Below are positions 27,319 to 42,383 of a DNA stretch of 64,000 nucleotides, one piece after another. Source of the DNA: Chrysemys picta bellii (taxonomy: Eukaryota). The stretch covers positions 17,918,001 to 17,982,000 of the forward strand of contig NC_088803.1 of NCBI RefSeq assembly GCF_011386835.1, read 5' to 3'. The notes beneath the pieces are model-generated. The model was not told the origin of the DNA and made no database searches. It worked only from the letters and a program-made list of their open reading frames with translations. Numbering within the stretch: position 1 is the stretch's first letter; every line of letters begins with the position of its first letter. A program made the translations under genes and the position numbers.

Positions 27319-27385
27319 TATAAGGCACGGATGGGCTGGGGAGAGGGGCACAGGATTGAACTCAGGGCCAGCGGAAAGGTAGCAG
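27319..27385 (+). promoter_or_regulatory. Putative TATA box and short non-coding first exon of the SLC12 gene
   Basis: TATAAG at 27319-27324; candidate donors AAG|GTAGCA (27378) or CAG|GTACTG (27385); GATA site CTGATAAG at ~27161. Confidence 0.45.
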
Positions 27386-27826
27386 GTACTGGGGGACGGG
27401 AGGGCGGGATTTTCTGTCCATCTGCATCTTCTGCCACCCTGAGGAAAGGGAACCCAGGAGTTCTGGCTCCCAGCTCCCCAGGCCTGGGAGGGGAGTGGGG
27501 TCTAGTGGTTAGAACGAGGTGGTGATGTGGGACTGGGAGGCAAGACTCCTGGGTTCTCTCCTAGCTCTGGGAGGGGAGTGGGGTCTAGTGCTTAGAGCAG
27601 GGGGAGGGGCTGGGAGCCAGGACTCCTGGGTTCTATCCCCAGTTTCACAATCTCTAAAATGGAAAGAACAACTCAGAGAGAGAATGTGTGTGTGTGTGTG
27701 TGTGTCCCTGCTGCCTCCTGCTGGCAGGGACAGGCCCTGCTCAGTGAGTGGGGTGGGGTGAGTTTAACCCTTTCCTGCCCAGAGTACTGGATTCCCCCCT
27801 CACCCCCAGGTGGACCTGGCACCCCC

Positions 27827-30800
27827 ATGGACTCCCCGGCCTACAAGACGGTTCTGGCCTTGGGCCGGTTCAAGGTGCGGAAGCTCCAGACGGGCCCTGC
27901 CCTGGACAAAGGCAAGGAGGGGGCAAGCCCCCTGCCGTGCCCCCCAACCCCGTCCATGGAGGGCTCTGACCAGGCGGATGAGGGGGGCTCCCTCTCGGCT
28001 CCCCCGGACTACGCGACCACAATGGACGTCAGTCCCTGCTACGAGTTCTACGCCCAGTCGGCCCCCCCTGGGCGGGCCCGCAAGAGTCGCCCCTCGCTGG
28101 AGGTGCTGCGTAACGTGGTGAGCACTGGGGGCACTGTGTGGAGTGGGGAGAGGGGAGGCCCAGCCGGGGGTGCTGTGCTGCAGGGAGTGGGGGCGGGGCT
28201 CGGCAGGGGGCGCCATGCTGCAGGGAGCTCGGCAGGGGGCGCTGTGCTGCAGGGAGCTCGGCAGGGGGCGCTGTGCTGCAGAGGGTTTGGCAGGGAGCAT
28301 TTTGCTGCAGGGAGCAGGGGGCTCGGCAGGGAGCATTGTGCTGCAGGGAGTGGGGGCTTGGCAGGCGGCGCTGTGCTGCAGGTAGTGGGGGCTTGGCAGG
28401 GGGCATTGTGCTGCAGGGGACTCGGCAGGGGGCGCTGTGCTGCAGGGAGCGCTGTGCTGCAGAGGGTTTGGCAGGGAGCATTATGCTGCAGGGAGCAGGG
28501 AGCTCAGCAGGGAGCGCTGTGCTGCAGGGAGCGGGGGGCTCGGCAGGGGGCGCTGTGCTGCAGGGAGCGGGGGGCTCGGCAGGGGGCGCTGTGCTGCAGG
28601 GAGCGCTGTGCTGCAGGGAGCGGGGGGCTCGGCAGGGGGCGCTGTGCTGCAGGGAGCGGGGGGCTCGGCAGGGAGCATTGTGCTGCAGGGAGTGGGGGGC
28701 TCGGCAGGGGGCGCTGTGCTGCAGGGAGTGGGGGGCTCGGCAGGGGGCGCTGTGCTGCAGGGAGCAGGGGGCACTGTGCTGCAGGGAGCAGGGAGCTCGG
28801 CAGGGGGTGCTGTGCTGCAGGGAGCAGGGGGCACTGTGCTGCAGGGAGTGGGGGGCTCGGCAGGGGGCGCTGTGCTGCAGGGAGCAGGGAGCGCTGTGCT
28901 GCAGGGAGCGGGGGCTCGGCAGGGGGCGCTGTGCTGCAGGGAGCAGGGAGCTCGGCAGGGGGTGCTGTGCTGCAGGGAGCAGGGGGCTCGGCAGGGAGCA
29001 TTGTGCTACAGGGAGCAGGGGGCTTGGCAGGGGGCGCTGTGCTGCAGGGAGCGGGGGGCTCGGCAGGGGGCGCTGTGCTGCAGGGAGCGCTGTGCTGCAG
29101 GGAGCGGGGGGCTCGGCAGGGGGCGCTGTGCTGCAGGGAGCGGGGGGCTCGGCAGGGGGCGCTGTGCTGCAGGGAGCAGGGGGCGCTGTGCTGCAGGGAG
29201 CGGGGGCTCGGCAGGGGGCGCTGTGCTGCAGGGAGCAGGGAGCTCGGCAGGGGGTGCTGTGCTGCAGGGAGCAGGGGGCTCGGCAGGGAGCATTGTGCTG
29301 CAGGGAGCAGGGGGCTTGGCAGGGGGCGCTGTGCTGCAGGGAGCGGGGGGCTCGGCAGGGAGCATTGTGCTGCAGGGAGCAGGGAGCATTGTGCTGCAGG
29401 GAGCTCGGCAGGGGGCGCTGTGCTGCAGGGAGCAGGGGGCTTGGCAAGGAGCGCTGTGCTGCAGTGAGCAGGGGGCGCTGTGCTGCAGGGAGCAGGGGGC
29501 TCGGCAGGGGGCGCTGTGCTGCAGGGAGCGGGGGGCTCGGCAGGGGGCGCTGTGCTGCAGGGAGCGGGGGGCTCGGCAAGGAGCACTGTGCTACAGTGAG
29601 CAGGGGGCACTGTGCTGCAGGGAGCAGGGGGCTCGGCAGGGAGCATTGTGCTGCAGGGAGTGGGGGCTCAGCAGGGGTCATTGTGCTTCAGGGTGTGGGG
29701 GGCTCCTGGCTGCAGGGTGCGGGGGGCTCAGCAGGGGGTGCCGTGTTGCTGGGAGGAGGGGGGCCGGCAGGGGGTGCCGGGAACAGGAGCATGGCTTGGA
29801 AGGGGGTGCTGTGCTGCAGGGCGCGGGGGGCTCAGCAGTGGGCGGTCTAATGCTGTTTCCCCACCGACGCAGGAGGACGGGCCCGGGTTCCCTGATGCTC
29901 CTGACCCTGGGGAATCCAGGGCTAAGGAGGAGGACGAGGAGGATCCAGACGCAGCAAGCCCTGAAGCGGAACCAGTCCGGTTCGGTTGGGTGACCGGCGT
30001 GATGGTAAACTGAGACCTCTCGGGGAGGGGAGGGGGGGTCCAGTGGGTCAGCGGGGCGGGGCGGGGGAGCAGGCTCATCTCACCCACCTCCCTTTTCGCT
30101 CCCCAGATACGGTGCATGCTCAACATCTGGGGCGTGATCCTATATCTCCGGCTGCCTTGGATCACAGCCCAGGCTGGAATAGGTAATAGTGGGGATGGGG
30201 GTGCCCCATGGCTAGGCCCCCTTCCAGCACCGCCAATTACTCGTGGCTGGGTAGGAGCGAGGAGCCAGCTGGGAGCTTGTGGTGGGTTCTCGGTGTTCCC
30301 CAATGGGAGCAGGAGGGTGCCCAGTATTGGGGGGGGGGTAAAGTGGGGGGCAGGGGGTGGGTTCATTCCCCAGGTCCCCATTCACCATCTTCCCCTCCCC
30401 CCCAGGGCTGACATGGCTCATCATCCTCATGTCAGCTGTAGTCACCACAATCACTGGCTTGTCCATCTCAGCCATCTCCACCAATGGCAAGGTGAAGGCA
30501 GGTGAGAGCCACGTCCGGGGGCACTGTGGGGCTAGGGAGGCGGGTTCAAACTGGGGCCGCCACACAAGCAGGGCTTGCCCCAGAGGCTAGGGAAGTGCTC
30601 CCCTTTGGCAGAAAGGGGAGCTGTTTCTCAGGCGGGCTGTTATCTCAGCCTGGCCGGGGGAAGAGAGAGACAACACCCACCCACACACACAGCTACACAA
30701 TGAGACCCAACTGCAGAAACACACAGCTAGAGATGCATAGGTGTGCGGACACAAAACTAGCTCCAGTCCCACACAGTTAGACTGAACTACAGCCATACGC

Positions 30801-42131: not shown

Positions 42132-42377
42132 GGGGCACTGCGGGCTTAGCCTGAGGGAGTAGCCTGGAAACCTGGGTTCTTTCCCCAGCGGTGGACGGAT
42201 CATGGCCCCCAGCTGGGCAGGGGGCTGATGCTGGTGCTACCGTCTCCGCACGCTCAACTGTCCCCTGCGATGTTGCCACGGGGACTCGGATGCCTGGGTC
42301 CCATGCGCAGCCTGGGCCGGGGCCTGTTGTGCTCTGCCCCTGTCAGGGGGTGTCCCCCACCACACTGCACTGTAAAT

Positions 42378-42383
42378 ATTAAA
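42378..42383 (+). terminator. Candidate polyA signal (ATTAAA) of the SLC12 gene
   Basis: ATTAAA ~250 nt after the stop codon, in an AT-rich patch. Confidence 0.5.

Follow-up and report, generated by a model that had tools for sequence, protein, structure and literature searches.

Gene content of the locus

The window, that is, the whole 64,000-nucleotide stretch of Chrysemys picta bellii DNA analysed here, contains a gene of the SLC12 family on the plus strand between KLHL33 and OSGEP, both on the minus strand, in the position where an earlier preliminary description of this DNA had placed a second Na-Cl cotransporter gene. The surrounding genes in the window are the following.

About 20530 to 22900, minus strand: KLHL33 orthologue, flanking NCC2
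42932 to about 48500, minus strand: OSGEP, flanking NCC2
From 49314, plus strand: APEX1, beyond OSGEP
About 59000, minus strand: PIP4P1/TMEM55B, beyond APEX1

The gene was modelled by splice-site-constrained exon chaining with a turtle orthologue (P0216) as the guide, which yielded 26 coding exons on the plus strand (27827 to 42131) and introns that all begin with GT and end with AG. The coding sequence, 3078 nt in length, specifies 1025 amino acids with one stop codon, the terminal one, and its open reading frame is free of defects. The modelled protein matched P0339 (XP_065421616.1, C. picta bellii SLC12A3-like isoform X3) with 100% identity and no gaps, so that the turtle gene is already annotated in RefSeq. 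Both the exon chaining and this identity bear out the 26 coding exons, canonical splice sites and continuous reading frame of about 1025 amino acids that had been read from the DNA. The features of the gene are listed below.

27319 to 27327, plus strand: putative TATA-like motif TTTATAAGG, read from the sequence, upstream of the gene
27331 to 27387, plus strand: upstream mini-exon encoding MGWGEGHRIELRASGKVAG, in RefSeq isoforms X1, X4 and X5 (100% match to the N-terminus of P0343 in tblastn)
27827 to 28117, plus strand: coding exon 1 (aa 1-97), with the ATG; RFKV, an RFxV motif, in the N-terminal domain
28198 to 29705, plus strand: G-rich minisatellite with 24/36/72-bp units, occupying most of intron 1
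29873 to 30004, plus strand: coding exon 2 (exon chaining)
30107 to 30182, plus strand: coding exon 3; TM1, ion-site residues L146 N147 I148 W149 G150 V151 I152
30406 to 30501, plus strand: coding exon 4 (exon chaining)
31263 to 31402, plus strand: coding exon 5; TM3, F221, N225, M231, H232
33188 to 33298, plus strand: coding exon 6 (exon chaining)
33443 to 33554, plus strand: coding exon 7 (exon chaining)
33638 to 33768, plus strand: coding exon 8; TM6, P347 S348 T350 G351 I352 L353 N357
33866 to 33950, plus strand: coding exon 9 (exon chaining)
34126 to 34286, plus strand: coding exon 10; large extracellular loop, two conserved N-glycosylation asparagines
34641 to 34748, plus strand: coding exon 11; TM8, A464 S467 S468
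35156 to 35279, plus strand: coding exon 12 (exon chaining)
35373 to 35474, plus strand: coding exon 13; TM10, Y540
37074 to 37229, plus strand: coding exon 14 (exon chaining and contig match)
37328 to 37427, plus strand: coding exon 15 (exon chaining)
37642 to 37753, plus strand: coding exon 16 (exon chaining and contig match)
37842 to 37970, plus strand: coding exon 17 (exon chaining)
38156 to 38262, plus strand: coding exon 18 (splice joint 38262/38441 in sequencing run X5)
38441 to 38523, plus strand: coding exon 19 (splice joints in sequencing run X5)
38724 to 38795, plus strand: coding exon 20, a 72-nt cassette left out of RefSeq isoform X4 (contig match)
39012 to 39116, plus strand: coding exon 21, 105 nt, left out of RefSeq isoform X5 (contig match)
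39623 to 39734, plus strand: coding exon 22 (exon chaining and contig match)
40019 to 40105, plus strand: coding exon 23 (exon chaining and contig match)
40427 to 40562, plus strand: coding exon 24 (exon chaining and contig match)
40709 to 40776, plus strand: coding exon 25 (exon chaining)
41990 to 42131, plus strand: coding exon 26, stop codon 42129-42131 (a run X5 contig spans 41990-42368)
42378 to 42383, plus strand: ATTAAA polyadenylation signal; 3' UTR of about 250 nt

The ATTAAA at 42378 is the sole A[AT]TAAA in approximately 1 kb past the stop codon, and the RNA-derived contigs end at 42368-42373, in agreement with the polyadenylation signal that had been claimed. The claim of a TATA box holds in part: a TATA-like motif is present at about 27319, but the ATG of RefSeq isoform X1 (27331) lies only some 5 nt past it and the motif therefore cannot set the start site of that isoform. 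In isoform X3, the mini-exon at 27331-27387 would be 5' UTR.

The protein cluster that holds the identical sequence carries PF08403, PF00324 and PF03522 (AA_permease_N, AA_permease and SLC12 domains, respectively), and a piece of the window itself matches PF00324. AA_permease_N, followed by AA_permease with 12 TM and by the SLC12 C-terminal domain, is the architecture of the Na+-dependent branch of the family.

The order KLHL33(-)/NCC2(+)/OSGEP(-)/APEX1(+) is the conserved arrangement of the tetrapod NCC2 locus. The genes run KLHL33-NCC2-OSGEP-APEX1 in the alligator and NCC2-APEX1-OSGEP in Xenopus, and NCC2 adjoins OSGEP in Podarcis. The preliminary description had proposed a comparison over fish, frog, lizard, bird and mammal, and for the frog, the lizard and the alligator the OSGEP/APEX1/KLHL33 surroundings proved to be kept. 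At the paddlefish "like" locus, a PARP14-like gene was the only neighbour seen within 10 kb.

Transcription and selective constraint

A contig from run X5 contained the joints 38262/38441, 38523/38724, 38795/39012, 39116/39623 and 39734/40019, which are exactly the predicted introns 18-22. A second contig of this run enters the 3' UTR and, to judge from its first 70 nt, which did not align, seems to connect exon 25 with exon 26. The evidence for expression consists of contigs of about 5-10x from this one run, whose RNA status was deduced from the splice joints. No spliced joints for turtle NCC2 were found in runs X1, X9 and X12, which are neutral on expression; run X1 covers introns and must therefore be DNA or pre-mRNA, while X9 and X12 match mostly repeats. 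Lack of expression had been named beforehand as an outcome that would count against the gene, and the low-depth spliced contigs matching predicted introns speak to the opposite.

The dN/dS ratio of the turtle gene was 0.15 with respect to alligator and 0.12 with respect to Podarcis, and the protein is 96-97% conserved among turtle families. Taken with the gene model, these data show that turtle NCC2 is an intact gene maintained by purifying selection, whose transcripts are spliced in accordance with the model. Passages of PMC11381001 and PMC11145369 describe the loss or pseudogenisation of NCC2 in birds and most mammals, and the support for expression is thin (one run, low depth), but it is exceedingly improbable that the turtle gene is silent or decaying towards that state, given the intact 1025-aa reading frame over 26 exons, the dN/dS of 0.12-0.15, the correctly spliced contigs and the conservation among turtle families; the first three of these are the grounds on which pseudogene status was rejected.

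Phylogenetic position with respect to SLC12A3

Tetrapod orthologues were reached by scoring exon 1 as part of a long translation of the window without stop codons. A protein search with the 53-aa extracellular-loop exon returned mostly short fragments, one full-length representative (teleost slc12a10) and no tetrapods, and a full-length search with teleost slc12a10 listed teleosts only. Two trees were computed, a quick one of 56 rows and a careful maximum-likelihood one of 36, both unrooted and without an NKCC outgroup. P0054, a partial, low-quality Cottoperca sequence tried as the stand-in for a fish canonical slc12a3, had a branch length of 2.2 and was kept out of the careful tree.

In both trees, a branch of length 0.36 with 100/100 support lay between canonical SLC12A3 (shark, bichir, amphibians, squamates, birds and mammals) and all remaining sequences. 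The other group comprised teleost slc12a10, the bichir/paddlefish and amphibian "-like" proteins and the reptile genes, including this turtle. Within it, the window protein nested successively among turtles, turtles plus crocodilians, reptile "A3-like" and amphibian "A3-like" proteins, with bichir/paddlefish "like" and teleost slc12a10 sequences adjacent. Since the trees are unrooted, the monophyly of NCC2 assumes a root on the long branch between NCC and non-NCC sequences. The AU test rejected a single tetrapod clade, i.e., a tetrapod-only duplication (delta lnL 142, p 1.3e-12). The phylogeny that had been suggested as a check thus sets the window protein outside canonical SLC12A3.

Seven residues mark the NCC2 side, H90R, G463A, I638V, D882E, A887E, L963E and T985S, found in 31-33 of 33 NCC2 proteins, the criterion being that 18 or more of 19 NCC proteins have the canonical residue. 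Both paralogues were present in seven species of the set (Rhinatrema, Ambystoma, Lissotriton, Pelodytes, Phrynocephalus, Anolis sagrei and Polypterus). The canonical SLC12A3 of C. picta bellii was not found among the 120 matches listed. In a lizard, canonical SLC12A3 adjoins a HERPUD1-like ubiquitin-domain gene.

The window protein was 63-67% identical to canonical NCC versus 58-62% to teleost NCC2. This higher identity to canonical NCC, together with database names such as "SLC12A3" or "SLC12A3-like" and pocket residues which are all of NCC type, could be taken to indicate that the gene arose by recent duplication of SLC12A3 in tetrapods or reptiles alone, or is canonical SLC12A3 at a new locus, and is not an NCC2/SLC12A10 orthologue. 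Such an origin is very unlikely and is largely refuted by the 100/100 branch against all canonical sequences, the rejection of one tetrapod clade by the AU test, the co-occurrence of both genes in squamates, amphibians and bichir, the different lizard loci (canonical gene at the HERPUD1-like locus, "like" gene at OSGEP) and the seven signature residues common to the window protein and fish NCC2. The identity values fit, without proving, a fast evolution of the teleost proteins.

The tree and AU test, the signature residues, synteny, purifying selection and spliced RNA therefore support the identification of the gene as a second Na-Cl cotransporter that belongs to the NCC2/SLC12A10 lineage and is distinct from canonical SLC12A3. 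We hold with high confidence that the stretch is the intact, transcribed turtle orthologue of this ancient SLC12A3 paralogue at the conserved KLHL33-OSGEP position.

Relation to known Na-Cl cotransporters

The paralogue was named "NCC3" in the literature of 2014-15 for amphibians and squamates (Hartmann et al. 2014, as cited in PMC4301019), and NCC2 in non-avian reptiles is the subject of Motoshima et al. 2023 (Physiol Genomics 55:113, as cited in PMC11381001 and PMC11145369). The turtle gene belongs to the same clade as these tetrapod genes, lies in the same KLHL33/OSGEP/APEX1 neighbourhood and has the same 26-exon SLC12 architecture; it presents no structural difference and is simply the turtle member. 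The caution in the preliminary description that finding the gene might not in itself be novel was correct, in view of the RefSeq entry and of the published accounts of the reptilian paralogue. The gene is real, already annotated and already described in reptiles, and in that sense ordinary; its existence, orthology and locus, being in RefSeq and the literature, add no new biology. The analysis does confirm that a non-avian reptile keeps an intact copy of a salt transporter lost by birds and most mammals, and it provides an exact, RNA-supported exon map.

With canonical renal NCC/SLC12A3 (human structures 7Y6I, 8FHT and others), to which its identity is 63-67%, the turtle protein has in common the Na and Cl sites, His234, the thiazide contacts, both N-glycosylation sites, the gate salt-bridge residues, RFxV and the T60 equivalent. 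It differs as a separate ancient paralogue at another locus, in having neither the TFG motif nor the phospho-sites T46 and T55, and in the seven fixed changes given above. Teleost slc12a10 (gill-ionocyte NCC2; eel intestinal NCCbeta) is orthologous according to the tree and signature residues. The teleost proteins have long branches, and in them M233L is accompanied in most cases by H234N and T352I and frequently by S350A, whereas the turtle protein keeps the canonical residues; conclusions from teleost pharmacology may therefore not hold for it.

Ion sites, thiazide pocket and regulation

Human NCC sites were taken from PMC10043231 (ion sites) and PMC12337910 (thiazide contacts), and in the alignment all Na+-, Cl-- and thiazide-pocket residues are kept in the turtle protein. 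The Na-site residues kept include the TM8 serine pair S467/S468 as well as L148, W151 and A464; likewise kept are the thiazide contacts N149, N227, N359, F223 and Y540 (all in human numbering). Turtle H232 aligns with human H234, the NCC-specific histidine at the position of a K+-coordinating tyrosine (PMC12337910). The product would be a 12-TM dimeric SLC12 carrier, predicted to couple the uptake of Na+ and Cl- without K+, and the kept contact residues make thiazide sensitivity plausible. According to the preliminary description, the carrier may serve salt uptake outside the kidney, for example in cloaca, bladder, gut or pharynx. The protein also retains the RFxV docking motif and, as T65, the threonine that corresponds to T60, and the carrier may be regulated by WNK-SPAK/OSR1. 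As counterparts of T46 and T55 are missing, its regulation is probably unlike that of renal NCC.

The turtle pocket contrasts with eel NCCbeta because the teleost NCC2 proteins carry M233L (118 of 118), H234N (103 of 118) and T352I (89 of 120), S350A being a further frequent change in their ion/drug pocket. Eel NCCbeta, which is resistant to thiazides and has a Cl--dependent current (PMC10043231), is the only protein of the NCC2 lineage with transport and thiazide data in the literature examined, and the window protein has the NCC2-wide G463A beside the Na-site residue A464. Judged from these two points, turtle NCC2 might resemble the eel protein, with thiazide insensitivity and an uncoupled Cl- current unlike renal NCC. 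We regard this as unlikely, since neither the window protein nor any of the 21 other tetrapod NCC2 proteins examined has the three teleost changes, and all thiazide-contact residues of PMC12337910 are kept.

These residue patterns lead us to propose, tentatively and at somewhat less than even confidence, that tetrapod NCC2 kept the full canonical NCC pocket while that of teleosts changed, and that reptile and amphibian NCC2 may be a thiazide-sensitive, electroneutral "second NCC", differing from renal NCC mainly in N-terminal phospho-regulation and tissue. If so, the properties of eel NCCbeta would be a teleost novelty. The canonical pocket of tetrapod NCC2 is relevant to the question of whether the whole lineage or teleosts alone share thiazide resistance and the Cl- current, and also to that of the site where turtles use this carrier (e.g., bladder, cloaca or gut).

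Gene Structure

The window is composed of GC-rich vertebrate DNA, and unmistakable SLC12A3-like peptides were found in stop-free frames of its forward strand between 27.8 and 42.1 kb. The gene was modeled with a script that tested all GT or GC donors and AG acceptors flanking the coding blocks; joins were retained only when in frame and stop-free, and scoring was done against a turtle orthologue. The resulting NCC2/SLC12A10 gene consisted of 26 coding exons (27827–42131, + strand), with pyrimidine-rich acceptors and GT..AG boundaries in all 25 introns. The coding sequence, 3078 nt in length, showed no frame defects, and its product of 1025 aa matched, from end to end and at 100% identity, the RefSeq protein XP_065421616.1 (P0339), annotated in Chrysemys picta bellii as "SLC12A3-like isoform X3." This match independently validates the exon model and indicates that the gene was already annotated. 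The additional features of the gene are as follows.

Features of the NCC2 gene
27319, +, TATA-like motif TTTATAAGG (sequence read)
27331–27387, +, mini-exon of other RefSeq isoforms of the identical gene, adding 24 aa upstream
38724–38795, +, exon 20 (72 nt, 24 aa), C-terminal domain, skipped in a RefSeq isoform
39012–39116, +, exon 21 (105 nt, 35 aa), C-terminal domain, skipped in a RefSeq isoform
42378, +, poly(A) signal ATTAAA, the sole such signal within ~1 kb 3′ of the stop codon

The preliminary description, which listed 26 exons, canonical splice sites, an intact open reading frame of ~1025 aa, a TATA box and a polyadenylation signal, is right in every countable respect. One reservation concerns the TATA-like motif, which cannot set the start site of isoform X1 because it lies only ~5 nt ahead of the X1 start codon.

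Homology and Phylogeny

The exon 1 search, scored inside a long stop-free reading, recovered proteins from turtles (90–97%), alligator (68%), tuatara and snakes, each named SLC12A3 or SLC12A3-like. Among the matches listed for the full-length turtle protein, identity was 69–100% with reptile "like" genes, 66–73% with amphibian "like" genes and 62–67% with canonical SLC12A3, which was represented by birds, mammals, amphibians, squamates, bichir and a shark; at least seven species in that list carried both the "like" and the canonical gene. The search with a fish representative yielded at least 120 teleost slc12a10-type proteins.

In maximum-likelihood trees (LG+C20; a quick one of 56 rows and a careful one of 36), built without an NKCC outgroup and with the root position assumed, canonical SLC12A3 formed one group, set apart by a branch of length 0.36 with 100/100 support. 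The window protein lay outside it, nested with turtles, then alligator, then other reptiles and then the amphibian "like" genes, beside which stood teleost slc12a10 and the "like" genes of bichir and paddlefish. The species tree is repeated on each side of the split, as expected if the duplication predates the divergence of ray-finned fish and tetrapods. Constraining all tetrapod sequences to a single clade lowered the log-likelihood by 142 units (AU p 1.3e-12). A line of evidence that needs no tree comes from seven signature columns (H90R, G463A, I638V, D882E, A887E, L963E, and T985S), each fixed in 18 or more of the 19 canonical NCC proteins but holding another residue in 31–33 of the 33 NCC2-side proteins, including that of the window. 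The earlier identification of the gene as NCC2/SLC12A10, distinct from SLC12A3, is supported by the tree (root assumed), the AU test and the signature residues.

The preliminary description had cautioned, rightly, that the presence of the gene might not be new. RefSeq annotates NCC2 in at least 12 turtle species, and a third NCC clade in amphibians and squamates, lost in birds and mammals, was described as "NCC3" (Hartmann et al., 2014, cited in PMC4301019). In non-avian reptiles the paralogue has been reported under the name NCC2 (Motoshima et al., 2023, cited in PMC11381001 and PMC11145369). The observation is confirmed and, given this prior description and annotation, is a correct reading of an already known gene.

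Transport Pocket and Regulatory Sites

The window protein was mapped to human NCC numbering via a primate sequence, with ion and thiazide site lists taken from PMC10043231 and PMC12337910. It keeps L148, W151, A464, S467 and S468 of the Na site; G353, I354, L355 and Y540 of the Cl site; two sets of residues from the disputed second sites (N149, I150, P349, T352; G152, V153, I154, S350); R145/E282 and K478/D363/E504 of the gate; N149, N227, N359, F223 and Y540, which contact thiazides; and Y386 together with both N-glycosylation sites. Also kept is His234, at the position where NKCC and KCC have a Tyr that binds K+ (PMC12337910). The other 21 tetrapod NCC2 proteins that were compared likewise retain these residues. 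In contrast to these canonical residues of turtle and other tetrapod NCC2, the pocket of teleost slc12a10 is altered: among the matches listed, M233L occurred in 118/118, H234N in 103/118, T352I in 89/120 and S350A in 33/120. This contrast is the sole mildly new point of the analysis. The eel protein NCCbeta resists thiazides and shows a Cl− current (PMC10043231), a phenotype to which these substitutions may contribute and which should not be transferred to the turtle protein.

The N-terminal region retains an RFxV docking motif, here RFKV, along with the threonine equivalent to T60; comparison with human NCC numbering revealed no equivalents of T46 or T55 and no TFG motif; this suggests that WNK-SPAK control would operate with fewer phospho-sites.

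Selection and Expression

Comparison with alligator over 1017 codons gave a dN/dS ratio of 0.15, and comparison with Podarcis over 970 codons a ratio of 0.12. Among the public runs containing this stretch, the share of its words present in run X5 was close to the exonic share. The joints of one X5 contig (38262/38441, 38523/38724, 38795/39012, 39116/39623, and 39734/40019) are exactly model introns 18–22, both exons 20 and 21 being present in this RNA contig. A second contig extends to 42368 and, judging from its unaligned first 70 nt, seems to connect exons 25 and 26. The splice joints, seen in contigs of low depth, indicate that the gene is transcribed and spliced as modeled.

Genomic Neighborhood and Repeats

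Neighboring genes were placed by tblastx against the alligator locus and by Pfam.

Neighbors and repeats
~20.5–22.9 kb, −, KLHL33
28198–29705, + (coding strand), G-rich minisatellite of 1.5 kb with 24/36/72-bp units, consensus GCAGGGGGCGCTGTGCTGCAGGGA..., most of intron 1
32059–32687, interstitial telomere-like (CCCTAA)n array, ~630 bp, degenerate (~69% matches), intron 5
36024–36454, 34-bp minisatellite, ~13 copies, intron 13
~40300–40340, short repeat, intron 23
41133–41779, CR1-like LINE reverse-transcriptase fragment, intron 25
42425–42672, tandem repeat of a 65-bp unit (3.8 copies), in the NCC2–OSGEP spacer
42932 to ~48.5 kb, −, OSGEP (TsaD domain), tail to tail with the transporter
from 49.3 kb, +, APEX1
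near 59 kb, −, PIP4P1/TMEM55B

The transporter does lie between KLHL33 and OSGEP, as first proposed, and it was found near OSGEP in three other tetrapods: the order is PARP gene, KLHL33(−), transporter(+), OSGEP(−) and APEX1(+) in alligator; transporter, then OSGEP(−) in Podarcis; and transporter, then APEX1 and OSGEP in Xenopus tropicalis. In Phrynocephalus, canonical SLC12A3 adjoins a gene whose 387-aa product has a ubiquitin domain, as HERPUD1 would.

The tail-to-tail spacer from the NCC2 poly(A) signal to the last OSGEP exon is ~550 bp. In each of the three + frames, the intron 1 minisatellite gives rise to spurious open reading frames longer than 500 aa. Contig depth at the repeats of introns 23 and 25 is uninformative on NCC2, since it was thousands-fold in every run examined. 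Upstream of KLHL33, the window contains TEP1-like pieces (e.g., 8220–8558, − strand, a weak DUF4062 match), and its first 20000 nt differ from the alligator locus (L002 1–7328), where a PARP-domain gene directly precedes KLHL33 without TEP1 between. An Emys orbicularis protein named "PARP2-like" (P0212, XP_065270081.1) contains an NCC2 exon 1 peptide, 94% identical to that of the window and with a Pfam AA_permease_N match, and looks like a chimeric annotation fusing adjacent genes. A Macrochelys "PARP2" protein (P0350) falls in the same 90% cluster.
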